A stretch of DNA of 64,000 nt, taken from IMG/VR virus record IMGVR_UViG_3300029258_002750, positions 1 to 64,000 of that record; one strand, given 5' to 3'. Both the position numbers and the translations under genes were made by a program. Below the pieces are notes generated by a model. That model saw only the letters and a list, made by a program, of their open reading frames with translations. It searched no databases and was not told the DNA's origin. Below, piece after piece: positions 8,531-19,016 of the stretch. Position 1 is the first letter of the stretch. Each line of letters starts with the position of its first letter.

Positions 8531-8540
8531 TTGTTCTAGT

Positions 8541-8610: not shown

Positions 8611-8641
8611 TATGACGACCGTGGGGCTTTCACCCACGGCC

Positions 8642-8771
8642 GCCGGATCGGCGACGCGAGAGCTTGCGTTCACGCCGCCGGGTTGCTGCGGCCCCTCTTG
8701 GCCCTGCCGAGTCCAGGTAACCACCAAGGGGCCTGCCATTCACTGATGTACTCCCGTCAAGTTCATCCGGC
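8642..8771 (-). ncRNA. structured RNA, divergent member of the Y-like family (rod with central bubble)
   Basis: GCCGGAT/ATCCGGC closing stem, GACGGGAG/CTCTCGCGTC, GGGAGTACATC motif, apical GGCCCC/GGGGCC stem. Confidence 0.45.
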
Positions 8772-8802
8772 TGCTGGCCGACGTTGTAGACGACGAGAGG
8801 GA

Positions 8803-8876
8803 TAGCGCGGGCAGGATTTGAACCTGCGATCTCCGGGTTATGAGCCCAGCGTCATACCGAACTAGACTACCGCGCG
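8803..8876 (-). tRNA. tRNA-fMet(CAT), canonical elbow
   Basis: C1/T72 mismatch, GGG/CCC anticodon stem, CTCATAA loop, D-loop GG, T-loop TTCAAAT. Confidence 0.9.
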
Positions 8877-8945
8877 TCGTTGTGCAGGGAGAACAGAGTC
8901 CCTTTGTCCTGGTCGAGCCAGGCTTACGCGACCTGCACCGCGATT

Positions 8946-9300
8946 TGGAGCTGGCGAGAATCGAACTCGCGTCCTGTAACCTATCCACCCGCGCGTCTAC
9001 GTGCGTAGCTCGCTCTCCTTAGTCCCCTCGTCTGAGCGCGAGCGTCTCTGGCGAGCGGGCGCCTCTAGGGAGTGTTCTCGTCCTTCACCGGGCGAGGCCC
9101 CGGATCAGGTACCAGCCCATCTTGTGGCCCAGACCTTTCACCCCATGGGCGGGGGATCCAGCTGGGGGCGGCCTTTTAGGCTGCCAGGCGAACAGGTGCG
9201 TTGGCAACTATTCAGTTTCCAGGTTGTTTATAGAGGCCAACCTGGGACCTCTACACGCAACGCGAGCTTCACCGGCCCAGTCGATACCAGTGTCAGCCCC
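8946..9300 (-). ncRNA. ssrA: tmRNA, tag peptide (A)ANAPVRLAA
   Basis: 5' GGGGCTGACACTGGTATCGAC, 3' GCGAG-TTCGATT-CTCGC-CAGCTCC-A, G3:U70; resume GCC at 9205, TAA at 9176-9178. Confidence 0.95.
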
Positions 9301-9315
9301 GTGTGTTCGTGCCCA

Positions 9316-9329
9316 AGTTGTCAAAGAGC
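9316..9329 (-). promoter_or_regulatory. boxA-like antitermination site GCTCTTTGACAACT in tmRNA leader
   Basis: Resembles rrn boxA; near-identical copy at 16687-16701 before the tRNA array. Confidence 0.5.
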
Positions 9330-9420
9330 GGAGGAACGGACCGGACGCTTCTCATAAGGGGGAAAGTGGGGATTCGATAGGCGCTACCCGGTCCGCTTCT
9401 CCTTCTCACTCGCTGTCTTG

Positions 9421-9429
9421 GTTATACCC
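9421..9429 (-). promoter_or_regulatory. promoter -10 motif GGGTATAAC upstream of tmRNA
   Basis: Variant of the recurring GGGTAGAAC motif. Confidence 0.55.
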
Positions 9430-9457
9430 TGCGGCCGACAGCCGCAAGGAAGTTTCA

Positions 9458-9529
9458 TGGGTCCGCAGGGATTCGCACCCTGACCGCCTCGGGTAAAAGC
9501 CGAGCGTGCTCCTGTTACACCACGAACCC
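9458..9529 (-). tRNA. tRNA-Lys(TTT), A18/G55
   Basis: CTCGG-CTTTTAC-CCGAG; T-loop TGCGAAT. Confidence 0.9.
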
Positions 9530-9530
9530 G

Positions 9531-9600
9531 TGGTACCCCCGCCCGGAGTCGCACCGGGGTCGCCGGGTTTAGAAGACCTGGCCGCCTCTCTGCCGGGGGC
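9531..9600 (-). tRNA. tRNA-Arg(TCT), reduced D arm, encoded CCA
   Basis: Loop CTTCTAA; T-loop TGCGACT; GCCCCCG/CGGGGGT-ACCA. Confidence 0.7.
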
Positions 9601-9603
9601 AAA

Positions 9604-9674
9604 AGCGGGCACCGGGAATTGCACCCGGGTCATCGGGATGGAAGCCCGACGCTCTACTTCTAAGCTATGCCCGC
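9604..9674 (-). tRNA. tRNA-Gly(TCC)
   Basis: TCGGG-CTTCCAT-CCCGA; T-loop TGCAATT; U73. Confidence 0.9.
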
Positions 9675-9678
9675 GAGA

Positions 9679-9750
9679 TGACCCCGGTGGGGATCGCACC
9701 CACACCTTCGGCGTGAAAGACCGACATCCAGACTACTAGACCACGGGGCC
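9679..9750 (-). tRNA. tRNA-Glu(TTC)
   Basis: TCGGT-CTTTCAC-GCCGA; T-loop TGCGATC. Confidence 0.9.
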
Positions 9751-9836
9751 AGGTGGCCGAGCGGGAGGGCTCGGCCGGGGGCGACCGGAAGACCGGACGC
9801 ACTCCACCATCACAGACTCGCTCGCGCGAGTTGCGA

Positions 9837-9908
9837 TGGGCACGGTGAGAATCGCACTCACGACCTCTGCTACGTCAAAGCAGCGCTCTTCTACTGAGCT
9901 ACGCGCCC
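9837..9908 (-). tRNA. tRNA-Val(GAC)
   Basis: CTGCT-TTGACGT-AGCAG; T-loop TGCGATT. Confidence 0.9.
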
Positions 9909-9994
9909 CGGCAACCGCCCGGTCCGTCAGGACCGTATTCCACCTTGGACGGATGGTGCATCCCTTCATCTAAACACGGGTCTAAGAGGCGGCA

Positions 9995-10076
9995 CGGAAG
10001 GCGGAGGAGTTGCACCCCATCCCGAAGGACCATCCGGTTTCAAGCCGGTACTCGGCGCTGGCCGAGATCGCCTTCC
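9995..10076 (-). tRNA. tRNA-Ser(TGA)
   Basis: Loop CTTGAAA, long variable arm, G73; T-loop TGCAACT. Confidence 0.85.
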
Positions 10077-10081
10077 AGACA

Positions 10082-10154
10082 TGGAGCCTACGGGACTCGC
10101 ACCCGTGCCCTCCGACCTGCCAGATCGGCGCTCTCCTAACTGAGCTAAGGCCCC
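10082..10154 (-). tRNA. tRNA-Ala(GGC)
   Basis: G3:U70; CCGAT-CTGGCAG-GTCGG; T-loop TGCGAGT. Confidence 0.9.
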
Positions 10155-10158
10155 TCGA

Positions 10159-10230
10159 TGGAGCAGAAGGGAATTGCACCCTCAACCTCGGCGTTGCGAA
10201 CGCCGCGCTCTCCTATTGAGCTACTGCCCC
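10159..10230 (-). tRNA. tRNA-Ala(CGC)
   Basis: G3:U70; CGGCG-TTCGCAA-CGCCG; T-loop TGCAATT. Confidence 0.9.
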
Positions 10231-10709
10231 GTGTGTTCGTGTTCTCCGCAGTCGCCGCAGTCGTGATCGCAGTGGGGACACTTGCCCTCCTCCGAGCACT
10301 CGCCGCAGACCGTGGTGACGGTCGTCATGTCCGGGTACTCCCTGAGCATCTTCTCGGCTAGCTGCCGGATGGGCAGCCCCGGAACACTCGGGTCCGGCTC
10401 GGCAGCCTTGCCGCAGACCGAACACTTCGTGTTCTCCAGGTGTTTGGCGAGCGCGTCGATCTTCGCTGCGTCGATCTTCGCGAAGGCATCGTGCTCGAAC
10501 TGGAGGACAGCGACCTGCCCGGTTGAGTAGTTCTCGGCGACCGGGTAGTCGGTGCCGCCGCGACCACATCGTGCGCAGGCGCGCATCATCATCGGATCGA
10601 GCGGTCGCTCCGGCTTGACCTCGGTCTGCGTGTGCTGCACGACCACGATCATCCGGCCGACGGATGGCGCGTCCTCACAGAACGCGCACCAGACGGGCTC
10701 ATCAACCAC
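10221..10709 (-). CDS. Cys-rich multi Zn-finger-like protein embedded in tRNA array
   Basis: GGAGG SD + GTG; six CxxC pairs; stop TAG is nt 8-10 of tRNA-Ala(CGC). Confidence 0.7.
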   Translation of the reverse strand: MVDEPVWCAFCEDAPSVGRMIVVVQHTQTEVKPERPLDPMMMRACARCGRGGTDYPVAENYSTGQVAVLQFEHDAFAKIDAAKIDALAKHLENTKCSVCGKAAEPDPSVPGLPIRQLAEKMLREYPDMTTVTTVCGECSEEGKCPHCDHDCGDCGEHEHTGQ

Positions 10710-10722
10710 TACGACCTCCGAA

Positions 10723-10778
10723 TCGGGCACCCGGGATTCGCACCCGGAGTCTCTCCTGATGAGATGAGAGAGACAACC
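10723..10778 (-). pseudogene. tRNA remnant (T arm + 3' acceptor strand only)
   Basis: CCGGG-TGCGAAT-CCCGG-GTGCCCG-A with no matching 5' strand or D arm. Confidence 0.5.
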
Positions 10779-10781
10779 CAA

Positions 10782-10852
10782 TCGGGGAACCCGGAGTTGC
10801 ACCGAGATTACACCGTCCCGAACGGCGCGTGTTGCTGTTACACCATTCCCCG
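10782..10852 (-). tRNA. tRNA-Pro(CGG)
   Basis: CGCCG-TTCGGGA-CGGTG; T-loop TGCAACT. Confidence 0.9.
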
Positions 10853-11458
10853 TAGTTCGTCGATGTCCCGAATCTCGTCCACGACCGCAGCCAACCGCGC
10901 CCGCCGCTTCGCGCCGAACACACCGCGCTTGTCGTTCACGAAGGCGATCTTCCGCCTCGGGTCATCTTGAATGTCCTCGAACCTGACGATCATGTCGTCG
11001 ATTCCTCGTCGGGCGTGCGTCGAGTGCTCGATGATCAGATCATCGTCTGCGAAGTCCACAGCGCGCTCCCCGATCCACTCCTTCCGAAAGGTGCGGCCGA
11101 AGAGGCGCTCTAGCTTCCGCTTCACCGGCAACTCGTCCTGCCGATACGCTAGGCCAGCTTGCTTGAGGTTCGCACGAGTCGCGGTGAGACAGCCCTCGCG
11201 GTTGTTCTCCCACGCGGCTCGACCGCCTTGCTTGCCCCACGCACGGCGCTGCGCTTTGGTTCCGGCGATCTGGCCGGATGTTGGCGACGGCCGACGCACC
11301 GTGATCGCTTCTCGCTGCTTGGCCGAGAGCTTGATGTCTCTGACCATGTAGCGAATCGTGCTCTTGCCAAGCTCAAGTTCCTCGGCAATCTCGGTGAGCG
11401 ACGCGCCGTCCCGTCGAAGGCGTCTCGCTCGATCGCGGATCTCTTTCGGGTAAGCCAT
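10838..11458 (-). CDS. HTH + DUF559/Vsr-like putative homing endonuclease
   Basis: N-terminal HTH (GASLTEIAEELELGKSTI); FRKEWIGERAVDF....IIEH nuclease-like core; own GGGTAAGAT-N6-ATG promoter. Confidence 0.6.
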   Translation of the reverse strand: MAYPKEIRDRARRLRRDGASLTEIAEELELGKSTIRYMVRDIKLSAKQREAITVRRPSPTSGQIAGTKAQRRAWGKQGGRAAWENNREGCLTATRANLKQAGLAYRQDELPVKRKLERLFGRTFRKEWIGERAVDFADDDLIIEHSTHARRGIDDMIVRFEDIQDDPRRKIAFVNDKRGVFGAKRRARLAAVVDEIRDIDELRGMV

Positions 11459-11470
11459 ACGAGCATCTTA

Positions 11471-11525
11471 CCCACGCGACCTCTGCGATTACAAGAGCGC
11501 GCTGACTAGACTGCGCTACAGTCCG
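11471..11525 (-). pseudogene. truncated tRNA-Pro-like 5' half
   Basis: CGGACTG-TA-GCGCAGTCTAGTCAGCGC followed by a distorted anticodon arm; T arm replaced by the promoter of the downstream nuclease gene. Confidence 0.55.
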
Positions 11526-11530
11526 TTGAA

Positions 11531-11615
11531 CGGAACGCGGAGGACTTGCACCCCAGACCTTTCGGCCCCAGCCGGGTTCGAGCCGGTGCCCGCGCGCTTG
11601 TCGGGTTCGCGTTCC
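11531..11615 (-). tRNA. tRNA-Ser(CGA)
   Basis: Loop CTCGAAC, long variable arm, G73; T-loop TGCAAGT. Confidence 0.85.
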
Positions 11616-11703
11616 TTGGAGCAGCGCGCCTGGCGTCTCACCAGGAGACGCCGAAGCGCCCAGGGATACCGTTGCCGTACGACCGGCTCCCACGCCTGCA
11701 AGA

Positions 11704-11772
11704 TCCCGCAGGAGAGGCTTGCACTCTCTTGCTCGTCCTTATGAGAGACGGCCCACTCTACGTGTCTGCGGG
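11704..11772 (-). tRNA. tRNA-Met/Ile2(CAT), elongator type, poor D arm
   Basis: CCCGCAG/CTGCGGG-A; CGTCT-CTCATAA-GGACG; T-loop TGCAAGC. Confidence 0.7.
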
Positions 11773-11776
11773 TTGA

Positions 11777-11847
11777 AGCCCTAGCCCGGAGTCGCACCGG
11801 GGTCTCCTCCGTACCAAGGAGGTGTTCTGCTCTTGGACCACTAGGGC
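11777..11847 (-). tRNA. tRNA-Thr(GGT)
   Basis: CCTCC-TTGGTAC-GGAGG; T-loop TGCGACT. Confidence 0.9.
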
Positions 11848-11851
11848 AAGA

Positions 11852-11925
11852 TCAGGGCGGTGGGATTCGCACCCACGGTCTCGTGTCCCCCAGACACGCG
11901 CCTTACTAGACTAGGCCACGCCCTG
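11852..11925 (-). tRNA. tRNA-Pro(GGG)
   Basis: CGTGT-CTGGGGG-ACACG; T-loop TGCGAAT. Confidence 0.9.
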
Positions 11926-11929
11926 TTGA

Positions 11930-12001
11930 TACTCGCGCCGGGAATCGCACCCGGATCTCCTCTTTCGGAGAGAGGTATCCTATCTTTTGGACGACGCGAG
12001 C
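11930..12001 (-). tRNA. tRNA-Arg(CCG)
   Basis: CCTCT-CTCCGAA-AGAGG; T-loop TGCGATT. Confidence 0.9.
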
Positions 12002-12002
12002 T

Positions 12003-12079
12003 TGGTACTCCCGGCAGGATTCGCACCTGCGAAGACCTCTTTAGGAGAGAGGCGCCTTAGTCTGCTCGGCCACGGGAGC
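12003..12079 (-). tRNA. tRNA-Arg(CCT), encoded CCA
   Basis: CCTCT-CTCCTAA-AGAGG; T-loop TGCGAAT. Confidence 0.9.
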
Positions 12080-12082
12080 GCA

Positions 12083-12154
12083 AGCCCCGACTCGGAGTTG
12101 CACCGAGTTCTCCTCCGTACGAAAGAGGCACATCACTCTTTATGCTTTCGGGGC
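12083..12154 (-). tRNA. tRNA-Thr(CGT)
   Basis: CCTCT-TTCGTAC-GGAGG; T-loop TGCAACT. Confidence 0.85.
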
Positions 12155-12246
12155 AGGATCGGGCATGTCCCAAGAGCACCCGGCCCCTAGAAGGCCGGAC
12201 TCATGGGCGTGCATCGCAGCGCCTAGAACGCCGTGAGTCCCGATCA

Positions 12247-12330
12247 CGGAGGAGGGGGGAGTCGCACCCCAACCTGACGGACCACCCGGATTCCAGCCGG
12301 GGCTCGGAGCTACTCCGAGTTCTCTCCTCC
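12247..12330 (-). tRNA. tRNA-Ser(GGA)
   Basis: CCCGG-CTGGAAT-CCGGG, long variable arm, G73; T-loop TGCGACT. Confidence 0.85.
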
Positions 12331-12356
12331 AGCAGAGCTGGGTCAGCGCAGACCTG

Positions 12357-12926
12357 CTACGCGACCCGCTCCTTCGCCAGGAACGGCTCCCAGCTCGCCA
12401 GGACCACACCGCGCGGGACCCGCAGGCCGGGCTTCCAGCTCGGGGCGGCAGGCTTCTTCCTGGGCCGCATCTTGGCTTCCTTCGGCATCTTGTCGGCCTT
12501 GCGCGCGTTGCAGCTCTCGCAGGCCGCGACGCAGTTCTCCCAGGTCGTCGGCCCGCCCTTGGAGCGGGGCGTGACGTGGTCGATCGTGAGCTTCCTCGGG
12601 GGAAGCTCGGCGCCGCAGTACTGGCAGGTGTGCTCATCGCGCCTGTAGAGGTTCGGCCGGTTGAAGCTGACCCTCTGTGGTGGCCGCTCGCCGTACTTCT
12701 TGCAGACGACCACCTCGGGGGCCGGGATCGGCTGGCCCGCCGTCTTGATCATCCGATCGGTGTCGGCGCGCTCGATCCACTCCTCGAGCGTCATCAGGTA
12801 GAAGCTCGTCGGGCACATGATCGAGGCCATGTCCCTCATCACGTTGCAGAGGGCGACCTTGATCGGCAGGAACGTGACCGGCTGCCAGTTCCTATTCAGC
12901 ACCAGGCAAGGTTCGTCGATGATCAC
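12357..12926 (-). CDS. HNH endonuclease (McrA/HNH_5-like)
   Basis: CLVLNRNWQP N-terminus; RDEHTCQYCG...LTIDHVTPRSKGG...WENCVAACESCNARK. Confidence 0.9.
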   Translation of the reverse strand: MIIDEPCLVLNRNWQPVTFLPIKVALCNVMRDMASIMCPTSFYLMTLEEWIERADTDRMIKTAGQPIPAPEVVVCKKYGERPPQRVSFNRPNLYRRDEHTCQYCGAELPPRKLTIDHVTPRSKGGPTTWENCVAACESCNARKADKMPKEAKMRPRKKPAAPSWKPGLRVPRGVVLASWEPFLAKERVA

Positions 12927-12938
12927 GGCTCTCTCCGA

Positions 12939-13012
12939 TCAGGGAGGCGGGAGTCGCACCCGCATGATGTCCTGGTCCCAAACCAGGCGGCTTACTGTTA
13001 GCCCACTCCCTG
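12939..13012 (-). tRNA. tRNA-Pro(TGG)
   Basis: CCTGG-TTTGGGA-CCAGG; T-loop TGCGACT. Confidence 0.9.
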
Positions 13013-13024
13013 GTGGCTGGTTGG

Positions 13025-13129
13025 TGGCACGCAGACGAGGACTCGAACCCCGCAAAGACCATCGGCCTGGGCCGTTTCCTACGATAACCCGGAGCACCCT
13101 TCCCTCCCTCTCCGTTCCGAGCTTCGCGT
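13025..13129 (-). ncRNA. 105-nt aberrant tRNA-like RNA with encoded CCA
   Basis: 3' CGGGG-TTCGAGT-CCTCG-TCTGCGT-G-CCA pairing partly with 5' ACGCGAA; no normal anticodon loop. Confidence 0.5.
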
Positions 13130-13187
13130 AGGACTCCACTCGACACTGAGTTCGCTCGTGGCGCTCTGCCGATCTGCGCACCGATGA

Positions 13188-13270
13188 CGGAAGGCGGGAG
13201 ACTCGCACTCCAACCCGAAGGACGCACGCCTTAGCAGGGCGGCCCGGCTCGCTTGTCCGGTTCACCTTCC
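13188..13270 (-). tRNA. tRNA-Ser(GCT)
   Basis: Loop CTGCTAA, long variable arm, G73; T-loop TGCGAGT. Confidence 0.85.
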
Positions 13271-13825
13271 AGTGGTCTTGGGGTAGCCGAAGCGATCGAA
13301 GTCGTCGCCCCACTTCTCGACTACCATCCGCTCGATCTCCGGCGTGTACTGGCTCTGCCAGTCGGCCGTGATCGGGCTCTGCGGGACGATGTGCAGCCGC
13401 TCGTTGGCGACGAACGGCAGCTCGCTGAAGCTCGCCTGGAGCTGTTCGTAGCGGATCAGCTGGGCGGGCTCGATCTCTCCCAGCCGAGCTGACTGGGACT
13501 CGAAGCCGGACCCTGCGGTCCTCTCAACGAAGGCCCCGAAGTCGTCCGGCCTCGCGCGGACGAACTCGCCCAGCTCGTTGGGCCACCGGGACACCCAGTT
13601 CCAGCAGGAGACCATTCTGCTGAATGGGTTCCTCACGGTCGCGATCACGAGGTAGCTCTCGCACCCGGTCGGGATCCCGATCCGATGCGTGAGCATCCGA
13701 CCGTCCTGCTCGCCGCCGATGCAGCCGAACCTGTCGCGCAGCGTGTGGAACACGCAGCGGGTGCCGGTCCGCATGTTGGCGAGGAAGACGAAACGGTGCG
13801 CGTGCGAGACGTTCATCTCGCGCAT
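13262..13825 (-). CDS. sulfotransferase family 2-like protein
   Basis: FVFLANMRTGT (5'-PSB loop), ATVRNPFSRMVS (3'-PB), IRYEQL, DFDRFGY. Confidence 0.75.
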   Translation of the reverse strand: MREMNVSHAHRFVFLANMRTGTRCVFHTLRDRFGCIGGEQDGRMLTHRIGIPTGCESYLVIATVRNPFSRMVSCWNWVSRWPNELGEFVRARPDDFGAFVERTAGSGFESQSARLGEIEPAQLIRYEQLQASFSELPFVANERLHIVPQSPITADWQSQYTPEIERMVVEKWGDDFDRFGYPKTTGR

Positions 13826-13832
13826 CGTCGCA

Positions 13833-13906
13833 TAGGGCCACTGGGACTTGCACCCAGCGCCTCCGGCATATCAGACCGGCGCTCTACCTGCATGAGCTAT
13901 GACCCT
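13833..13906 (-). tRNA. tRNA-Ile(GAT)
   Basis: CCGGT-CTGATAT-GCCGG; T-loop TGCAAGT. Confidence 0.9.
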
Positions 13907-13910
13907 GTGA

Positions 13911-13983
13911 TGGTCCCGGTCGGATTTGCACCGACAACCTCTTGGCCCTCGACCAAGCGCCTCTGCTGTTGGGCTACGAGACC
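13911..13983 (-). tRNA. tRNA-Leu(GAG), short variable loop
   Basis: CTTGG-TCGAGGG-CCAAG (C33); D arm GCCCAACAGCAGAGGC; T-loop TGCAAAT. Confidence 0.85.
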
Positions 13984-13987
13984 GGAC

Positions 13988-14052
13988 GCTCGACGTTGTT
14001 GGTGCCGCAGACGTGCATGTGTTCAGGATGTAGTCCACGACGGCATTCGAGC
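13988..14052 (-). ncRNA. short Y-like RNA
   Basis: GCTCGA-ATGCC...GGACTACATC...ACAACG-TCGAGC. Confidence 0.6.
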
Positions 14053-14055
14053 TGA

Positions 14056-14128
14056 TGATCCTGGTCGGATTTGCACCGACAACCTCCGCATCCTGAGTGC
14101 GGCGCCTCTGCTGTTGGGCTACAGGATC
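14056..14128 (-). tRNA. tRNA-Leu(CAG), short variable loop
   Basis: CCGCA-CTCAGGA-TGCGG; T-loop TGCAAAT. Confidence 0.9.
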
Positions 14129-14131
14129 GTA

Positions 14132-14203
14132 TGTCCCGGGAGGGATTTGCACCCTCAACTCTGGTGTTTGAGACCAGCGGCGTTGCTATTAGCCTACCGG
14201 GAC
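14132..14203 (-). tRNA. tRNA-Leu(CAA), short variable loop
   Basis: CTGGT-CTCAAAC-ACCAG; T-loop TGCAAAT. Confidence 0.9.
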
Positions 14204-14224
14204 TCTTCCGATGTTCTTTCCGCA

Positions 14225-14301
14225 GAACGTCGGTGTCTGACTGTTGCAGTTGGGGCAGAGGAAGCACCAGACCAGTGCCTCTGCTGTTGGGCTAGCGGAG
14301 C
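14225..14301 (-). pseudogene. degenerate tRNA (Leu-type 5' half)
   Basis: GCTCCGC-TA-GCCCAACAGCAGAGGC intact; anticodon and T arms decayed. Confidence 0.5.
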
Positions 14302-14378
14302 TGGTAGGGCGCCTGGGAATCGCACCCAGCTTGGAAAGGGTTATAAGCACCTCCGCGACACCTAGCCGCCCGCGCCCC
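14302..14378 (-). tRNA. tRNA-Ile(TAT), encoded CCA
   Basis: GGGGCGC/GCGCCCT-ACCA; loop CTTATAA on a bulged stem; T-loop TGCGATT. Confidence 0.75.
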
Positions 14379-14381
14379 TCA

Positions 14382-14455
14382 TGCCCCCGGTGGGAGTTGC
14401 ACCCACAATCTCTCGGTCCGTAGCCGAGCGCCTTAGTCTGTTTGGCCACGGGGGT
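14382..14455 (-). tRNA. tRNA-Arg(ACG)
   Basis: CTCGG-CTACGGA-CCGAG; T-loop TGCAACT. Confidence 0.9.
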
Positions 14456-14459
14456 TGGA

Positions 14460-14531
14460 TACCCGGACTGCGAGTCGCACGCAGAACTCGAGGTCCACAA
14501 CCTCGCGTGATCACTGTTTCACCATCCGAGC
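14460..14531 (-). tRNA. tRNA-His(GTG), no G-1, A73
   Basis: CGAGG-TTGTGGA-CCTCG; T-loop TGCGACT. Confidence 0.85.
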
Positions 14532-14535
14532 TGGA

Positions 14536-14606
14536 AGCGGCCTGCGGGAGTTGCACCCGCGCGAAGAGCTTGGGAAGCTCTCATGCTGCTGCTACATCAA
14601 GGCCGC
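14536..14606 (-). tRNA. tRNA-Gly(CCC)
   Basis: AGAGC-TTCCCAA-GCTCT; T-loop TGCAACT. Confidence 0.9.
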
Positions 14607-14671
14607 GTGCGCCGGATACCCAGGGGGGCTCCCCAGGCCAGCCGGTCCTTGCCGTGCTGCTTGCGATCCGA

Positions 14672-14754
14672 TCCGCCTGCGTGGATTCGCACCACGTTGC
14701 TCCGAAGAGACCCGGGTTACAGCCGGGCACGACCACTAGGTCGACCCCAGACGG
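14672..14754 (-). tRNA. tRNA-Tyr(GTA), long variable arm, C1:G72
   Basis: CCGTCTG/CAGGCGG-A; CCCGG-CTGTAAC-CCGGG; T-loop TGCGAAT. Confidence 0.85.
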
Positions 14755-14758
14755 TTGA

Positions 14759-14829
14759 AGCGGCCTACGAGAATCGCACTCGTGACTACAGCATGGCAAG
14801 CTGTCGCGTTACTACTACGCCAAGGCCGC
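14759..14829 (-). tRNA. tRNA-Gly(GCC)
   Basis: ACAGC-TTGCCAT-GCTGT; T-loop TGCGATT. Confidence 0.9.
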
Positions 14830-14838
14830 GTTGTAAGG

Positions 14839-15017
14839 GGCTCTCGCTGGGAATTGAACCCAGATCCTCCACACCACGATCGCTTCATAGCCGACCGAAG
14901 CCATCCACGGTCGCGCGGTCTGTGCGGCGTGCTTGCCATCCGACGAGCGTCAGAAACCGGGGCTGCTCGGCCCGGCACTGCGGTAGCTCGTGGACGACCC
15001 CATACACCATCGAGAGC
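14839..15017 (-). ncRNA. about 180-nt tRNA-like RNA with large internal domain
   Basis: Perfect 7-bp acceptor GCTCTCG/CGAGAGC and T arm CTGGG-TTCAATT-CCCAG enclosing about 140 nt of hairpins. Confidence 0.55.
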
Positions 15018-15028
15018 ATGTGTTCAGC

Positions 15029-15099
15029 TGGGCCATGAGGGAGTCGCACCCCCGCCTTCTCGGTGTGAACGAGATGCGCTTCTGTTACACCAATGGCCC
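15029..15099 (-). tRNA. tRNA-Val(CAC)
   Basis: TCTCG-TTCACAC-CGAGA; T-loop TGCGACT. Confidence 0.9.
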
Positions 15100-15104
15100 G
15101 GGTT

Positions 15105-15233
15105 CCGACGACGTGAAGGCGACGAGAGGGTTATCTAGCCACCACGGCCCTCTCCACGAAAGCGGAGAGACTGGGAGTCGAACCCAGATCGATCGAGTTA
15201 CAGTCGATGTACTCCCATCAGGGCATTCGTCGG
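15105..15233 (-). ncRNA. YrlA-type Y RNA #2 (circularly permuted tRNA mimic)
   Basis: CCGACGA-ATG...GATGGGAG; hairpin ATCGA-CTGTAAC-TCGAT; T arm CTGGG-TTCGACT-CCCAG; looped acceptor TCTCTCC-GCTTTCGT-GGAGAGG; CTCTCGTC...ACG-TCGTCGG. Confidence 0.8.
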
Positions 15234-15234
15234 A

Positions 15235-15306
15235 TGGAGTAGGTGGGAGTTGCACCCACGACCCTCGGTTTGCAGGACCGACGCTCTCCTACTGAGCTAC
15301 TACCCC
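15235..15306 (-). tRNA. tRNA-Ala(TGC)
   Basis: G3:U70; TCGGT-CCTGCAA-ACCGA; T-loop TGCAACT. Confidence 0.9.
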
Positions 15307-15310
15307 AAGA

Positions 15311-15382
15311 CGGCCCCCGTGGGATTCGCACCCACAACCTCACGGTCCAAAGCCGCGCGCTCTGCTGTTGAGCTAGGGGGCT
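15311..15382 (-). tRNA. tRNA-Gln(TTG)
   Basis: CGCGG-CTTTGGA-CCGTG; G73; T-loop TGCGAAT. Confidence 0.9.
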
Positions 15383-15624
15383 AGGTTCTTCTCGCGCTCG
15401 CGCGCTCGAATGATCGCAAGCTCGACCTTGCGCTCGCGGGCGGTCTTCTTCCCGCGCTTCTTCGCCAGGCACGTGTAGCAGTGCCTCGGCGGTTGGTGGC
15501 CGCTCCGCGCGGCCCGTTCGATGTGCTTCAGCTTGATCGGCCGATCGCACGCCCTGCATCGTCGGCCGCTCTCTTCAGCGAAGTGCGGCCAGTGGTAGTC
15601 CTTCTCTCGCTTGTTGGTGGCGAT
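15373..15624 (-). CDS. small basic CxxC/CxxC protein with apparent ATC start
   Basis: AGGAGG-act-ATC then ATNKREKDYHWPHF..CRAC..CYTC..; 83 aa; absent from ORF track because of its start codon. Confidence 0.55.
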   Translation of the reverse strand: MATNKREKDYHWPHFAEESGRRCRACDRPIKLKHIERAARSGHQPPRHCYTCLAKKRGKKTARERKVELAIIRAREREKNLAP

Positions 15625-15643
15625 AGTCCTCCTGGCTGGCGGA

Positions 15644-15716
15644 TAGCGTCGCCCGGATTCGAATCGGGATCCTCACAGGTTATGAGCCTGGCGAGCTACC
15701 GTTGCTCTACGACGCG
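15644..15716 (-). tRNA. tRNA-fMet-like(CAT) #2, canonical elbow
   Basis: C1/T72 mismatch, GAGC/GCTC D stem with GG, T-loop TTCGAAT. Confidence 0.85.
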
Positions 15717-15717
15717 A

Positions 15718-15791
15718 CGGCCCCCCTGGGATTTGCACCCAGAAACCTCCGGTTCCAGAGACCGGCGCTCTACTGATTGAGCTAGGGGGCT
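15718..15791 (-). tRNA. tRNA-Gln(CTG)
   Basis: CCGGT-CTCTGGA-ACCGG; T-loop TGCAAAT. Confidence 0.9.
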
Positions 15792-15795
15792 AGGC

Positions 15796-15860
15796 GCCCG
15801 ACGTTGGTGGTTGCCGTGTCGAGCACATGTTGGAGATGTAGACACAGCTGGCATTCGGAC
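15796..15860 (-). ncRNA. short Y-like RNA
   Basis: GTCCGA-ATGCC...CTACATC...CCAACG-TCGGGC. Confidence 0.6.
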
Positions 15861-15862
15861 GA

Positions 15863-15934
15863 CAGGCCGCCTGGGAATCGCACCCAGCAGACGGCAGGTT
15901 TTGGAGACCCGCCCGCGTACCTAGCGCGCGACCT
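15863..15934 (-). tRNA. tRNA-Trp(CCA)
   Basis: Loop CTCCAAA, G73; T-loop TGCGATT. Confidence 0.85.
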
Positions 15935-15937
15935 AGA

Positions 15938-16009
15938 AGTGCCGCCCCGGAGTTGCACCGGGCTCTTCGGTGTTGCAGACCGACGGATGAACTGATCTCC
16001 CTGCGGCAC
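15938..16009 (-). tRNA. tRNA-Cys(GCA)
   Basis: TCGGT-CTGCAAC-ACCGA; U73; T-loop TGCAACT. Confidence 0.85.
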
Positions 16010-16010
16010 G

Positions 16011-16085
16011 TGGCTTACCCCCTGGGATTCGCACCCAGAACATCCTGGTTAACAGCCAGGCACTCTACTATTGAGCTAGGGGTAA
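16011..16085 (-). tRNA. tRNA-Asn(GTT), encoded CCA
   Basis: CCTGG-CTGTTAA-CCAGG; T-loop TGCGAAT. Confidence 0.9.
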
Positions 16086-16157
16086 CTCAGCCCCTCGGAT
16101 TTGCACCGAGACCTCCTCCGGTAACAGCGGAGCGCTCTACTACTAAGCTAGGACTGA
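16086..16157 (-). tRNA. tRNA-Asn(GTT) #2
   Basis: CTCCG-CTGTTAC-CGGAG; G73; T-loop TGCAAAT. Confidence 0.85.
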
Positions 16158-16229
16158 TGACCCGGACGGGAATCGCACCCGCACTCTTCGGCGTGAGAGA
16201 CCGACGTGTTTCTGTTACACCACCGGGCC
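16158..16229 (-). tRNA. tRNA-Glu(CTC)
   Basis: TCGGT-CTCTCAC-GCCGA; T-loop TGCGATT. Confidence 0.9.
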
Positions 16230-16232
16230 AGA

Positions 16233-16304
16233 TGGGCCTGCTCGGATTTGCACCGAGAACATCCTGGTTAAGAGCCAGGCGTGATCCTGTTTCACCACAG
16301 ACCC
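16233..16304 (-). tRNA. tRNA-Lys(CTT)
   Basis: CCTGG-CTCTTAA-CCAGG; T-loop TGCAAAT. Confidence 0.9.
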
Positions 16305-16308
16305 AAGC

Positions 16309-16380
16309 GGGGAGATTCGGGAGTTGCACCCTCATTCACCGGCACGTGCTGCCGCTCGTGACGGATACCTGCTCGGTCCC
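16309..16380 (-). pseudogene. degenerate tRNA remnant
   Basis: T-loop TGCAACT and CGGCA/TGCCG hairpin with 5-nt loop; acceptor stem broken. Confidence 0.4.
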
Positions 16381-16385
16381 CAAGA

Positions 16386-16460
16386 CGGCCGCGACGGGAT
16401 TCGCACCCGCGATCTCCACCGTGACAGGGTGGCATGTTGACTTGGCTACACCACGCGACC
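16386..16460 (-). tRNA. tRNA-Asp(GTC)
   Basis: CCACC-CTGTCAC-GGTGG; G73; T-loop TGCGAAT. Confidence 0.9.
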
Positions 16461-16465
16461 AGGTT

Positions 16466-16603
16466 GACGTCCGAGTGAGGGAACCGCGAGTAGGTGCTCT
16501 TCCACTTGAGCTAGTTCGCCCCGAGTGGCGAACCCTGGAGTCGAACCAGGAACATCCCGCTGATGAAGCGAAAGTGCGTGTAGGATTCTCTCGGCCGGAC
16601 GCC
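16466..16603 (-). ncRNA. YrlA-type Y RNA #3 (circularly permuted tRNA mimic)
   Basis: GGCGTCCG/CGGACGTC closing stem; T arm CCTGG-TTCGACT-CCAGG; looped acceptor GTTCGCC-ACTCGG-GGCGAAC; D arm GCTCAAGTGGAAGAGC. Confidence 0.8.
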
Positions 16604-16605
16604 GA

Positions 16606-16677
16606 TGGGACCCCTCGGAATTGCACCGAGACCTTCCGGTTTTCAGCCGGGTGCTCTACTGGTTGAGCTAAGGCCCC
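16606..16677 (-). tRNA. tRNA-Phe(GAA)
   Basis: Loop CTGAAAA; D arm GCTCAACCAGTAGAGC; T-loop TGCAATT. Confidence 0.9.
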
Positions 16678-16686
16678 AAGACAGCG

Positions 16687-16701
16687 AGTTGTCAATGAGC
16701 A
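16687..16701 (-). promoter_or_regulatory. boxA-like site TGCTCATTGACAACT in tRNA-array leader
   Basis: Matches 9316-9329 copy except for one base. Confidence 0.5.
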
Positions 16702-16811
16702 GTGCGTTGACGCGCCGATCCGACTAGCTAGGTCAGGGGCAACGCCCTCGTCTTGTGCTTCCCTGGACTGAGGAGGCCGCGATTCCTTTCCACGATTCTC
16801 CTTTTGTCCTA

Positions 16812-16879
16812 AGCCCTTGCTCGGAGTCGCACCGAGACTCGCGGAGTACAAGACCGCGATCCGTCTCACGGACAAGGGC
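16812..16879 (-). tRNA. tRNA-Thr(TGT), short D arm
   Basis: GCCCTTG/CAAGGGC-T; loop CTTGTAC; T-loop TGCGACT. Confidence 0.75.
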
Positions 16880-17339: not shown

Positions 17340-19016
17340 TTACGCCTCCGGCTGCTCGAGGCTAATCGCCTCGATCTCTGCGACCCAGGCGTCCACGTCG
17401 TGCGTGTCGCCCCGGGCGAACCGATCGACCGTGCTCCAGATCGCGTCCGAGAACCCGCCGATGTTGAGGATCTCGTCGGGCGCGCTCGGCGCCTGGGTGG
17501 TCGTGTTCGGCGAGATGTCGATGCAGACCATCCGCGCCCCGCCCGCCTTCTTATGGAGCTGGCGGAACTCGGACATGAGCTGGGTCCCTCGCCCGTAGCG
17601 CAGGCTCCCGCGCGAGTCGACCCACGACTCGTTGTCGCTGACGATGACCACGAGCTTGAACTCGTGCGCCCTCTTCAGGCCGTTCAGGTGACGGAGGGCC
17701 AGCGAGAGGTTGGTCCCGCCGCCGCCCATCTGACCCAGCTTGATGGCGTTCGTCATGACCGTGTCGCGGGGGTTGATGAGCCGCGTGCTGTGGACGCTGG
17801 TGTCCACGGGAATCGCGATCGAGCCCTTGTTCCGCCGAAGCACGGTGGCCGCCATGAGACCAGCCACATCCACGCAGCGGACCTTGGTCGTCGAGCCCTT
17901 CCGCACGCCCGTGACCGGGCTGTGCATCGAGCCGCTGACGTCCACGATCACGGCCGTGGGCACACCGAAGCTGGGGACACTCTCGGTCGCGACCTCCATC
18001 GCGTCCTGAAGGGAGTCCCTGACCTCGAAGGGCAGGTCGATGGGCTCCGGCGCGCCGCTCTCCATCGCGTAGCGACGGTAGTACTGCGCGTACCGCTCGT
18101 AGATCGGGTCTGGGTGCTTGCCCGAGTTCAGGTACGCGACGAGCAGCTGGTAGGGGAAGACCCGGGCCTTCGCCAGCTCCTCGCGGTCGGCGATCCGAGC
18201 TGCGACCAGCTCGGCAATGCCGGGCTCGTCGAAGACGCTGTGGCGCGCTGCCGTGTTGAGGTTCTTGATTGTGAACTGGTAGCCGCCGTTGCGGACGATC
18301 TGCGCCCAGTGGTGCGGCTTGAGGGGCAGCGAGGTGAGCTGCCGGAAGTCGACGTCAGGGACCTCGGCCGACTCGCCGCGCTTGAACGCCTCGTAGTGCT
18401 GGACGATGCCGGGGAGCTTCGCCGCGTCGTGCTCGCGACCGAGGATGTAGCCGATGAGGGCCTTCTGCTCCTCGTCGACCGCCTTCGGGTGGGCGAGCCG
18501 GATGACGTCGGCCAGGCTCGGGTTCTTCCCAACCGTCGCGCGGAAGAGCGCGCGGGCCGACCGCTGCCGGATCCACTTGTTGACGAGCCGCTTGAGGCCC
18601 GACCCCATCGACTTCCGGCCGAGGACGCCGGACCGGACCATCTGGACCAGGTTGCGGACCATCTTGCCGTTGTCGATGACGCGGGTGAAGACCAGGTCGC
18701 ACAGGCGCGGGTCGGCCTTCGACAGCATGACCATAAGAGCCGCAGGCATGTCCTTCATCCCGCCCTTCTGGCGCGCGTAGACCGCGCACTTGGCGAGGAA
18801 GACGGGCTCGACCTGGTCGGCCGCCTGGCGAATGCCCTCGAGCTGGTCGACGGGGGAGGTGTAGTAGGTCGGGTTGAACGTGCCGGTGCACGCCAGCTGC
18901 GCGAGCGCGTGCTTCGGCCCAAACTGGTAGGCCGTGCCTCCGGCCTTGTTCGTGGTGTCGGTTGCGGGAACCGAGCGCCCTGCGGACGCACTCTGGAAGA
19001 CGGCCTTGTTCGCCAC
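17340..19016 (-). CDS. Ro60/TROVE-domain RNA-binding protein (Rsr-like)
   Basis: N.AGG.AY...PKHALAQLACTGTF..TYY; SLADVIRLAHPK; ARVFPYQLLVAY; VWA DVSGSM, GGGTNLS, IVSDNESW; LNIGGFSD. Confidence 0.95.
   Translation of the reverse strand: MANKAVFQSASAGRSVPATDTTNKAGGTAYQFGPKHALAQLACTGTFNPTYYTSPVDQLEGIRQAADQVEPVFLAKCAVYARQKGGMKDMPAALMVMLSKADPRLCDLVFTRVIDNGKMVRNLVQMVRSGVLGRKSMGSGLKRLVNKWIRQRSARALFRATVGKNPSLADVIRLAHPKAVDEEQKALIGYILGREHDAAKLPGIVQHYEAFKRGESAEVPDVDFRQLTSLPLKPHHWAQIVRNGGYQFTIKNLNTAARHSVFDEPGIAELVAARIADREELAKARVFPYQLLVAYLNSGKHPDPIYERYAQYYRRYAMESGAPEPIDLPFEVRDSLQDAMEVATESVPSFGVPTAVIVDVSGSMHSPVTGVRKGSTTKVRCVDVAGLMAATVLRRNKGSIAIPVDTSVHSTRLINPRDTVMTNAIKLGQMGGGGTNLSLALRHLNGLKRAHEFKLVVIVSDNESWVDSRGSLRYGRGTQLMSEFRQLHKKAGGARMVCIDISPNTTTQAPSAPDEILNIGGFSDAIWSTVDRFARGDTHDVDAWVAEIEAISLEQPEA

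Follow-up and report, generated by a model that had tools for sequence, protein, structure and literature searches.

A phage-encoded tRNA set with a rebuilt elbow, in which G18 and U55 are replaced together by A18 and G55

A 275-kb uncultured phage carries a nearly complete set of 42 tRNAs in which two interacting and supposedly universal bases of the tRNA elbow, G18 and U55, are replaced together by A18 and G55. The same swap was identified in many other phage tRNA arrays and in a few essential cellular tRNAs, and it seems not to have been described, as no prior description was found. Although the reason why an entire phage set has switched is unresolved, the change is believed, with high confidence, to preserve the shape of the elbow while removing the bases read by TruB, TrmH or a T-loop nuclease; that it reflects escape from an activity reading U55/G18 is proposed only tentatively.

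Identification and composition of the tRNA array

The analyzed window comprises positions 1 to 64,000 (64 kb) of IMG/VR record IMGVR_UViG_3300029258_002750. ARAGORN, Rfam and our own T-arm and cloverleaf scans were in agreement in identifying 43 T-arms with the loop T-G-C-R-A on the minus strand between positions 9458 and 16879. Of these, 39 possess perfect 5-bp stems, compared to a single such match on the plus strand of the whole 64 kb. Forty-two belong to tRNAs with an anticodon arm, representing elongators for all 20 amino acids, in agreement with the count of the first-pass annotation, while the remaining T-arm belongs to a minihelix-like element which lacks D and anticodon arms. Rfam scores for the tRNAs ranged from 45 to 67 bits (gathering score 29). 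The array and its associated features are as follows:

6525-6598 (-), solitary tRNA-Leu(TAA) with a short variable loop and canonical GG/TTC
8803-8876 (-), initiator-type tRNA-Met (C1/A72 mismatch, GGG/CCC anticodon stem) with a canonical elbow
8943-9300 (-), tmRNA, tag ANAPVRLAA, with a canonical TTCGA T-loop
9458-10230 (-), eight tRNAs with A18/G55: Lys-TTT 9458-9529, Arg-TCT 9534-9600 (odd D region, CCA encoded), Gly-TCC 9604-9674, Glu-TTC 9679-9750, Val-GAC 9837-9908, Ser-TGA 9995-10076, Ala-GGC 10082-10154, Ala-CGC 10159-10230
10723-10852 (-), minihelix-like element 10723-10780 (acceptor-like stem, one hairpin, TGC T-arm) and tRNA-Pro-CGG 10782-10852
10838-11458 (-), variable ORF with weak N-terminal HTH hits only
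11531-12330 (-), eight tRNAs with A18/G55: Ser-CGA 11531-11615, CAT 11704-11772 (short D-arm), Thr-GGT 11777-11847, Pro-GGG 11852-11925, Arg-CCG 11930-12001, Arg-CCT 12006-12079, Thr-CGT 12083-12154, Ser-GGA 12247-12330
12357-12926 (-), HNH endonuclease inside the array
12939-13270 (-), Pro-TGG 12939-13012 and Ser-GCT 13188-13270 (both A18/G55) and, between them, an unassigned tRNA-like T-arm with a TTC loop (3' end near 13028)
13262-13825 (-), sulfotransferase-like ORF inside the array, 75% identical in L022 (a syntenic relative)
13833-14829 (-), ten tRNAs with A18/G55: Ile-GAT, Leu-GAG, Leu-CAG, Leu-CAA (all three Leu with short variable loops), 14305-14378 (anticodon TAT or TTA, CCA encoded), Arg-ACG, His-GTG, Gly-CCC, Tyr-GTA (long variable arm), Gly-GCC
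15029-15383 (-), Val-CAC 15029-15099, Ala-TGC 15235-15306 and Gln-TTG 15311-15382 (all A18/G55), with an unassigned TTC tRNA-like element at about 15163-15228
15644-15716 (-), tRNA-Met(CAT) inside the array that keeps GG and TTCGA (1-72 mismatch, initiator-like)
15718-16460 (-), eight tRNAs with A18/G55: Gln-CTG, Trp-CCA 15863-15934 (3-bp D-stem), Cys-GCA, Asn-GTT twice, Glu-CTC, Lys-CTT, Asp-GTC
16493-16557 (-), YrlA-like tRNA-mimic module with a canonical T-loop and GG D-loop (below the Rfam threshold)
16606-16879 (-), Phe-GAA 16606-16677 and Thr-TGT 16812-16879 (68 nt, 3-nt D-loop), both with TGC T-loops
17340-19016 (-), Ro60/Rsr orthologue (TROVE plus vWA) just upstream of the array, homologues of which lie next to tRNA arrays in 8 of 49 loci

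Thirty-seven of the tRNAs display a regular D-arm with A-G exactly where G18-G19 is located in canonical tRNAs. A further four (CAT 11704, Trp 15863, Thr-TGT 16812 and 14305) have short or odd D-arms that still contain AG, while one (Arg-TCT 9534) has no definable D-arm. None has GG at positions 18-19, any GG present being A18-G19-G20 or located elsewhere in the loop. The tRNA-Leu genes provide an exact internal control, as the solitary tRNA at 6525 has the D-loop AACGGCAG with TTCGACT, while those at 13911 and 14056 have AACAGCAG with TGCAAAT on the same D-stem. The canonical GG/TTC pattern is also retained by the two initiator-like tRNA-Met genes, the tmRNA and the YrlA-like element. Of the three YrlA mimics proposed in the first-pass annotation, only the latter is supported by Rfam, at 29.4 bits (below the gathering score of 69), and the other TTC tRNA-like elements (8453, 13028, 14839 and 15163) remain unassigned. 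The observation is not an assembly artefact, since an independent JGI assembly is 100% identical over window positions 1-13102.

Coupled change at positions 18 and 55 and its distribution

Comparison of 265 strictly parsed tRNAs from 66+ sources revealed that G18/U55 and A18/G55 are almost mutually exclusive, with counts of 131 for G18/U55 (plus three ambiguous A-G-G, read as canonical), 129 for A18/G55 and no mixed states (Fisher 5.5e-73; 66 sources and 32 anticodons for the rewired class). AG occupies the same D-loop indexes as GG does in canonical tRNAs and, on supported branches, 11 of 11 phylogenetically independent pairs change position 18 together with position 55. The proposal that the D-loop A is position 18 and covaries with G55 is thus supported. 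Other elbow pairs also covary in array tRNAs, namely C19 with G56 in either 18/55 background and an A54/U58 swap. The window tRNAs are orthologues of the ordinary amino acid families rather than recent paralogues; many separate coupled changes are therefore implied, which fits selection.

The swap is not, however, a one-off system. It dominates whole arrays in other IMG/VR contigs and in Verrucomicrobiota MAG arrays, and occurs in single chromosomal tRNAs of SAR11 (Phe, 39 loci), CPR (Thr-GGU, Phe and Tyr), DPANN (Ala) and Elusimicrobia. These frequencies are biased, as the loci were retrieved with TGC-containing patterns. Initiator-like tRNAs with A18/G55 exist elsewhere, and the split between canonical initiators and rewired elongators is therefore specific to this genome.

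The array is a nearly complete set of structurally sound tRNAs in which the tertiary pair G18-U55 (pseudouridine 55 in mature tRNA) has been replaced gene by gene, while every other elbow and core position (U8, A14, R15:Y48, G19:C56, A21, G53:C61, U54, R57 and A58) is unchanged. That these represent working genes is further indicated by the retention of the elbow state among orthologues in the syntenic relatives L022, L062 and L058, and by compensatory stem changes in tRNA(CAT) relative to L022.

Proposed structural consequence and possible causes of the switch

The swap converts the tRNA-specific T-loop U-U-C-R-A, with an intercalating G, into the U-G-N-R-A loop with an intercalating adenosine that nearly all non-tRNA T-loops use; non-tRNA T-loops are UGNRA (88.7%) or CGNRA with an almost universal intercalating adenosine, tRNA-type UUCRA being the outlier (bioRxiv 10.1101/2022.12.26.521914). 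It is, therefore, inferred that A18 would still stack between R57 and A58 and contact base 55, and that the L-shape and the flat G19:C56 face would be kept. Shape-reading partners such as RNase P, the CCA-adding enzyme, EF-Tu and the ribosome should still accept these tRNAs, and compatibility with ordinary translation is suggested by the chromosomal tRNA-Phe of SAR11 genomes, which carries the same elbow. What is lost is U55 and G18 themselves, such that these tRNAs cannot receive pseudouridine 55 (TruB) or Gm18 (TrmH) and differ from host tRNAs for any factor that reads those bases. We hold this structural and functional reading with high confidence, although the three-dimensional geometry, expression, charging and modification state are not shown. 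The state is inherited within a lineage of phage tRNA arrays that often carry an HNH endonuclease and a Ro60 gene and, once established, is locked by epistasis, because no mixed intermediates are seen.

The most likely reason that all elongators of the array switched is selection to escape an activity, be it a host defence or a weapon of a competitor or a phage, which inactivates or sequesters canonical tRNAs through the U55/G18 T-loop-elbow signature during infection. This step, and with it the explanation as a whole, is tentative. Phage tRNAs are known to evade tRNA nucleases by changing the recognized site (PMC10264068, PMC11464382, PMC11555353), and a tRNase that cuts inside the T-loop at the conserved T and pseudouridine exists (PMC9086364). 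Furthermore, normally invariant elbow bases are diversified in these arrays while the structure is kept, and the distribution is patchy and close to all-or-little per genome. Conversely, no anti-phage nuclease or sensor that reads the T-loop or elbow is known, described systems being those that cut the anticodon arm (PMC13056530), and no candidate enzyme was found in the window or in about 30 kb of flanks. The phage's own initiator-like tRNAs, tmRNA and Leu(TAA) keep the canonical elbow and would stay exposed, the same elbow occurs in cellular tRNAs where no conflict is evident, most phage tRNA arrays checked, including large ones, are canonical, and the host is unknown. While the self/non-self function suggested in the first-pass annotation remains possible, the nucleases that it implicated are not supported. 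The HNH protein (12357-12926) is an ordinary HNH endonuclease with homologues in 18 of 49 array loci, including arrays with canonical elbows, and the product of the ORF at 10838-11458, annotated as DUF559- or Vsr-like, has no DUF559/Vsr match and is absent from the closest relative.

An alternative which is doubtful, yet only slightly less favored, is that UGCRA plus A18 forms a self-sufficient elbow, folding stably without pseudouridine 55, m5U54 or Gm18 and without the chaperone action of TruB and TrmA. Such an elbow would be selected where many tRNAs are made fast or where modification capacity is limiting, as in a phage burst or in reduced genomes. UGNRA with an intercalating A is what unmodified natural RNAs use, tRNA-like UUCRA loops performed worse in a riboswitch screen (bioRxiv 10.1101/2022.12.26.521914), and TrmA acts as a folding chaperone (PMC7641329). 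The single cellular cases found are mostly in the streamlined lineages SAR11, CPR and DPANN, the switch always proceeds to the same state, which fits an optimum, and canonical initiators and tmRNA in the same phage present no difficulty. However, most phage arrays, including jumbo-phage arrays, stay canonical, only one or two tRNAs are switched in the cellular lineages, and isosteric variants which do not obviously improve folding (C19:G56 and A54/U58) occur in the same arrays, while no stability data exist.

Neutral lock-in and hitch-hiking appears unlikely. In this scenario, A18/G55 is a near-neutral isostere that arose rarely, cannot revert because single changes are deleterious, and spread because whole arrays or array segments move between phages, helped by the array-borne HNH endonuclease. 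The absence of intermediates among the 265 tRNAs, the clustering of the elbow state on the tree (61 changes against 89 in shuffles), its inheritance in syntenic relatives, the frequency of HNH homologues in array loci and the isolated neutral-looking cases in cells are in agreement with this view. Yet the window tRNAs group with their own amino acid families, including canonical ones, rather than with each other, and about 20 or more separate crossings of a fitness valley are therefore needed. Arrays also start from canonical tRNAs, so drift alone should leave them mostly canonical; per-array fractions cluster at 0.75 or above, or at 0.3 or below.

Host mimicry is very unlikely: although related arrays with the same elbow and the same short tRNA-Leu are located in Verrucomicrobiota MAGs, one of them on a 3.4-Mb contig, those loci are themselves arrays with HNH and Ro60 genes, which makes them look like mobile elements, and the canonical tRNAs of the window (initiators and Leu-TAA) and canonical neighbours in all cellular loci argue, for a phage of unknown host, that canonical is the cellular norm. 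It is equally improbable that the genes are decaying copies or tRNAs diverted from translation, as, despite the aberrant D-arms of several members and the precedent of elbow-less tRNAs excluded from the ribosome (PMC13443448, PMC4574755), all 20 amino acids are represented by about 40 anticodons, identity elements such as G3:U70 in Ala and the G19:C56 pair are kept, compensatory changes and conservation are seen across relatives, and SAR11 genomes carry this elbow in their chromosomal tRNA-Phe.

Comparison with known elbows, T-loops and phage tRNAs

Relative to the canonical tRNA elbow (G18-pseudouridine 55 and G19:C56; PMC4810234), the cloverleaf, 7-nt T-loop, U54/A58, G19:C56, R57 and D-loop spacing are shared and position 18 occupies the same D-loop index, while A replaces G at 18 and G replaces U at 55, always together. 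With the generic T-loop and receptor motif of riboswitches, RNase P and rRNA (bioRxiv 10.1101/2022.12.26.521914), the array tRNAs share the loop sequence U-G-N-R-A and an adenosine supplied by a distant loop, the minor C54 variant paralleling CGNRA; here, however, the motif sits inside a tRNA, position 3 still makes the G19:C56 pair, and the geometry is inferred from covariation.

Phage tRNAs that escape anticodon nucleases (PMC10264068), including T5 tRNAs against PARIS and retron effectors (PMC11464382, PMC11555353), similarly differ from canonical tRNAs at otherwise conserved nucleotides, and a large set could replace host tRNAs. The known cases change the anticodon loop of a few tRNAs and have a demonstrated nuclease, whereas here the elbow of every elongator of the array is changed and no nuclease is known. 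The Staphylococcus non-proteogenic tRNA-Gly (PMC13443448, PMC4574755) are natural bacterial tRNAs that lack G18 and U55 and are hypomodified, but they also lose G19, have weak EF-Tu determinants, are only tRNA-Gly and are kept out of translation, while in the phage array G19:C56 is kept and all amino acids are covered. Finally, the large tRNA arrays of jumbo phages and mobile tRNA array units, for example those of Tunturiibacter phage Tunturi_5 and Virus Rctr197k, likewise comprise 30 or more clustered tRNAs with an embedded HNH endonuclease and often tmRNA or RNA-repair genes nearby, yet those arrays have canonical elbows.

Content and genomic setting of the tRNA array

The window represents the first 64 kb of the IMG/VR contig IMGVR_UViG_3300029258_002750, which is 275,101 bp in length. 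The same genome of about 275 kb was assembled independently, in circularly permuted form, in an ENA metagenome and in JGI sample 3300017989, the JGI copy being 100% identical over window positions 1 to 13102. The window encodes a DNA polymerase, a DnaB-like helicase, a primase, a sliding clamp, a RecA-like protein, a thymidine kinase, methyltransferases, a sigma factor, and ParB-like proteins, and its G+C content is 62 to 68%. A phage origin is likely, and the contig is treated here as that of an uncultured jumbo phage of unknown host. Megablast analysis of the array and tblastn analysis of the DNA polymerase against GenBank phages revealed no close relative, while more distant blastn searches identified only canonical arrays, in addition to the single rewired tRNA-Cys genes described below.

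ARAGORN, Rfam, and our own T-arm and cloverleaf scans agree on the tRNA content of the minus strand between positions 9458 and 16879, where 42 tRNAs with the T-loop T-G-C-R-A are present together with one minihelix-like element harboring the same T-arm. The anticodons, of which there are about 40, cover all 20 amino acids, and only Val-TAC, Leu-TAG, and a few others are missing. Thirty-seven genes possess a regular D-arm with A-G exactly where G18-G19 is located, four possess short or unusual D-arms which still contain AG, and Arg-TCT has no definable D-arm. Of the 42 rewired tRNAs, 32, plus the canonical Met, reach 45 to 67 bits on the Rfam tRNA model RF00005 (gathering score, 29), whereas the four Ser tRNAs, the Tyr tRNA, and the members with aberrant D-arms were found by ARAGORN (some only at relaxed settings) or by our own parse. 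Most genes lack an encoded CCA. The canonical GG/TTC pattern is retained by tRNA-Leu(TAA) at position 6525, the initiator-type Met at position 8803, a second Met(CAT) at position 15644, the transfer-messenger RNA (tmRNA), and one YrlA-like element. These results confirm the first-pass annotation with regard to the altered elbow, the count of 42, and the use of tRNA-Leu as an internal control. The members and neighboring elements with unusual features are as follows:

6525-6598, 13911-13983, 14056-14128, and 14132-14203, minus strand: the four tRNA-Leu genes, all with short (4- to 6-nt) variable loops instead of the long arm typical of bacterial and phage tRNA-Leu, while Ser and Tyr retain long arms
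11704-11772, minus strand: CAT tRNA with a 3-bp D-stem and 5-nt loop
16812-16879, minus strand: Thr-TGT with a 3-nt D-loop
9534-9600, minus strand: Arg-TCT with an 11-nt D region
15863-15934, minus strand: Trp with one spacer base
10723-10780, minus strand: 58-nt minihelix-like element
14305-14378, minus strand: tRNA with an encoded CCA, whose anticodon reads TAT (Ile) or, in an alternative register, TTA (which would read the stop codon UAA), the register being ambiguous
16493-16557, minus strand: YrlA-like RNA with a canonical elbow
17340-19016, minus strand: divergent Ro60/Rsr orthologue
13262-13825, minus strand: sulfotransferase-like open reading frame (ORF) embedded in the array, 75% identical in the relative L022, an IMG/VR contig (positions 893-1495)
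8453-8546, 13028-13122, 14839-14900, 15163-15228, and 28222-28298, minus strand: further tRNA-like elements with canonical TTC T-arms but no normal cloverleaf

Among the last group, two elements (8453 and 15163) share a 5′ motif, and none is assigned by Rfam. Although the first-pass annotation had proposed three YrlA mimics, the YrlA identity of these other TTC elements was not supported. A promoter and terminator scan identified one promoter-like site upstream of the array, at 17174-17147, which is no more than expected by chance.

With loops masked, each window tRNA is closest to the tRNA of the same amino acid in the syntenic relatives L022, L062, and L058 (all IMG/VR contigs) or, in some cases (for example, Gly-CCC, Ala-CGC, Pro-CGG, and His), to canonical tRNAs of the same anticodon in unrelated arrays, and not to other window tRNAs. 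The set is, therefore, not a recent burst of paralogues, and concerted evolution within the array was rejected because orthologues across genomes are closer than paralogues within the window. Each of the roughly 20 amino acid families carries the change, which has been retained through considerable divergence. The CAT tRNA at position 11704 differs from its L022 orthologue by compensatory changes in the anticodon and T stems, while its unusual D region is fully conserved.

Coupling of positions 18 and 55 and occurrence of the A18/G55 elbow

To establish whether the D-loop adenosine represents position 18 and covaries with G55, further loci were retrieved by means of a 17-nt T-arm pattern applied to IMG/VR, a pattern joining a D-arm to the T-loop applied to one genome per GTDB species, and BLAST analysis against GenBank phages. 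A strict cloverleaf parser, independent of ARAGORN, yielded 265 unique tRNAs with short variable loops, of which 134 possessed TTC and 131 possessed TGC. In the TTC tRNAs, GG starts at D-loop index 3 (7-nt loops), 3 to 4 (8-nt loops), or 3 to 5 (9-nt loops), and AG starts at the same indexes in the TGC tRNAs, with GG never located there in the TGC class and AG never located there in the TTC class. The combination G18/U55 was observed 131 times (plus 3 ambiguous A-G-G cases, which read as canonical) and A18/G55 was observed 129 times, while G18/G55 and A18/U55 were each observed 0 times and two TGC tRNAs possessed C at position 18 (Fisher's exact test, 5.5e-73). The TGC class alone spans 66 sources and 32 anticodons. 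All other tertiary positions have the same composition in both classes, as do the conserved core positions U8, A14, A21, U33, G53:C61, U54, C56, and A58. On a tree built from the remaining columns, position 18 changes together with position 55 in 11 of 11 independent pairs on supported branches (56 pairs on all branches; sign test, about 0.001), and the state changes about 61 times, against 89 in shuffles. The coupling is, therefore, not an artifact of shared ancestry.

The arrays also harbor other coupled rewirings of normally invariant elbow bases, namely, G18-C19 with U55-G56 (7 tRNAs), A18-C19 with G55-G56 (5 tRNAs), A54 with U58, together with G55 (14 tRNAs), and C54 with G55 (9 tRNAs); G54 variants were also noted. 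Such changes are what the three-dimensional elbow predicts, and they argue that the molecules fold as ordinary L-shaped tRNAs.

The A18/G55 elbow is widespread but usually rare. Whole arrays are dominated by it in other IMG/VR contigs, including L062 (27 of 27), L026 (15 of 18, plus 3 with another base at position 54), L058 (13 of 14), and L022 (16 of 18), as well as L078, L079, L042, and L102. The same is true of arrays on Verrucomicrobiota metagenome-assembled genome (MAG) contigs (L123, L149, L161, L172, L174, L177, L204, L225, L227, and L233), one of which is 3.4 Mb in length; the short tRNA-Leu type of the window recurs in Verrucomicrobiota MAG arrays, with either elbow. Myxococcota and Gemmatimonadota arrays possess the altered elbow in a minority of tRNAs (Pro, Ile, Gly-TCC, and Cys). 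Single chromosomal genes with this elbow include tRNA-Phe in 39 Pelagibacterales (SAR11) genome loci, tRNA-Thr(GGU), Phe, and Tyr in CPR bacteria, tRNA-Ala in DPANN archaea, and tRNA-Thr(GGU) in Elusimicrobia, all of which have canonical neighboring tRNAs. Streptomyces tRNA-Gly(TCC), with the D-loop AGTAGTA and located next to a canonical tRNA-Gly(GCC), matched the search pattern but was not counted, as its GTGCRA-containing T-arm is irregular.

Among five GenBank phages, with 100 tRNAs in the stretches examined (61 tRNAs in one set, none of which was rewired, and 39 in the other), only two rewired tRNAs were found, both tRNA-Cys, in Pseudoalteromonas phage J2-1 and Xanthomonas phage Xoo-sp13. 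In Tunturiibacter phage Tunturi_5 (PP885688.1, 228401-252524), at least 31 tRNAs were detected by ARAGORN in gaps where the table of annotated features lists no tRNA, one of which, a tRNA-Phe, has the T-loop TTGAA, that is, G at position 56. Per-array fractions of rewired tRNAs cluster at 0.75 or above (19 loci) or at 0.3 or below (25 loci), with few between, although this sample is biased because the search patterns contained TGC. It is probable that tRNA finders and annotation pipelines which penalize non-TTC loops under-call such genes.

Possible functions of the altered elbow and candidate associated genes

In the canonical elbow, G18 stacks between residues 57 and 58 and makes a single hydrogen bond to the “universally conserved” pseudouridine 55 (PMC4810234, a review which also lists the partners that use the elbow). 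A survey and genetic screen of T-loops outside tRNA reported that those loops are UGNRA (88.7%) or CGNRA, that the intercalating base is almost always adenosine, and that tRNA-type UUCRA is the exception and a weaker performer in that context (bioRxiv 10.1101/2022.12.26.521914). The phage elbow, U54-G55-C56-R57-A58 with A18, is, therefore, proposed to represent the general T-loop and receptor solution placed into a tRNA, a reading in which stacking of A18 within the loop is supported only indirectly, by its strict covariation with G55. This would explain why the two changes go together and why no intermediates are seen, and it predicts an unchanged outer face (G19:C56) for RNase P, the ribosome, and the other shape readers. 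The presence of the same elbow in the chromosomal tRNA-Phe of SAR11 genomes argues that it is compatible with normal translation. What is lost is the identity of U55 and G18, such that there can be no pseudouridine 55 and no Gm18, and the T-loop looks different to any base-specific reader.

Why a whole phage set switched is a matter of inference. Our tentative preference is for escape from an activity which recognizes canonical tRNAs through U55/G18. Phage tRNAs are known to evade tRNases through changes at the recognized site (PMC10264068, PMC11464382, and PMC11555353), and a toxin which cuts within the T-loop at the conserved T and pseudouridine has been described (PMC9086364). The nearly complete set, the diversification of elbow bases with retention of structure, and the patchy distribution are also consistent with this reading. 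However, no such defense is known, no candidate gene was found in the window or the flanks examined, and the phage's own initiators, tmRNA, and Leu(TAA) remain canonical. In a more specific form, which we consider unlikely but not excluded, the elbow would itself serve as a self/non-self mark (as the first-pass annotation had suggested) in phage-host or phage-phage conflict. An as yet unknown activity would inactivate canonical tRNAs through the U54-U55/G18 signature, possibly only elongators delivered by EF-Tu, which would explain why the initiators are left canonical, and lineages of large phages would answer with complete tRNA sets rebuilt on the riboswitch-type A18/G55 elbow and, occasionally, on further isosteres (C19:G56 and A54/U58). 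If the escape reading is correct, it points to a class of tRNA-directed conflict aimed at the elbow rather than the anticodon.

A self-sufficient elbow, which folds without TruB, TrmA, or TrmH, is a doubtful alternative, though one only slightly less favored than escape. It draws support from the riboswitch data (bioRxiv 10.1101/2022.12.26.521914), the chaperone role of TrmA (PMC7641329), and the occurrence of the elbow in streamlined cellular lineages, yet most phage arrays checked are canonical, and only one or two tRNAs per cellular genome are switched. Neutral lock-in with spread of mobile arrays appears less likely still; while the epistatic lock, the phylogenetic clustering, and the array-associated HNH endonuclease are in its favor, about 20 or more separate valley crossings would be needed, and the fractions per array are close to all-or-little. 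An absolute constraint on initiators was rejected, because rewired initiator-like tRNAs exist elsewhere, as was avoidance of the restriction site TCGA inside TTCGA, because A57 alone would remove the site and the genome keeps six TTCGA T-loops. Host mimicry and nontranslational use are both very unlikely.

The first-pass annotation had put forward two array-encoded proteins, of the HNH and the Vsr- or DUF559-like type, as possible nucleases. The HNH protein is a standard HNH endonuclease, homologues of which are present in 18 of 49 array loci and also accompany canonical arrays, including that of the cultured phage Tunturi_5; it is, therefore, most simply a homing-type enzyme. The ORF at 10838-11458 has no DUF559/Vsr hit and is replaced by an unrelated ORF in L022. 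The Ro60 orthologue passes the cutoffs of the Pfam TROVE and vWA_Ro60 models but scores 55.7 bits against a cutoff of 900 on NCBIfam Rsr, and the associated YrlA-like RNA scores 29.4 bits against a gathering score of 69. Ro60 homologues lie beside tRNA arrays in 8 of 49 loci, with both elbow types represented. Clustering of the ORFs of the 49 array loci, which was undertaken to find a gene specific to rewired arrays, recovered only HNH and Ro60, both of which also occur with canonical arrays. Similarly, Pfam, PHROGs, and NCBIfam searches of the array-embedded and flanking ORFs yielded nothing related to tRNA apart from HNH and Ro60. Extension by about 20 kb beyond each end of the window through independent assemblies revealed replication, nucleotide metabolism, and probable structural genes but no tRNA enzyme; outside the window, the same genome encodes an ADP-ribosylglycohydrolase, a deoxynucleoside kinase with intein-type (Hom_end) hits, and a 2086-amino-acid ORF without Pfam hits (assembled loci L247, 857-1921 and 6478-8250, and L244, 12562-18822).

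Relationship to described tRNAs and T-loops

Although G18 and pseudouridine 55 are taught as invariant, the data presented here reveal a natural, strictly coupled alternative, present across nearly complete phage tRNA sets and in single cellular tRNAs, which is probably functional. Full-text searches found no paper mentioning A18 and G55 in a tRNA context, and no mention was found in the elbow review, in the T-loop modification review, or in the paper on phage tRNA evasion. The question of whether the universal U55/G18 is kept for structure or for the enzymes that read it becomes testable with this alternative, and the rewired tRNAs, which should be blind to TruB and TrmH, could be useful as orthogonal or modification-free tRNAs.

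Compared with the canonical tRNA elbow, G18 and U55 are replaced by A18 and G55, a substitution seen in 129 of 131 members of the wider TGC class. The five-nucleotide loop sequence U-G-N-R-A of the generic T-loop motif is present, as T-G-C-R-A, in all 43 T-arms of the array. The nearest described case is that of the Staphylococcus nonproteogenic tRNA-Gly, which lose G18, G19, and U55, have weak EF-Tu determinants (a property not analyzed for the window tRNAs), and are excluded from translation, whereas the window set retains G19:C56 and covers all 20 amino acids.
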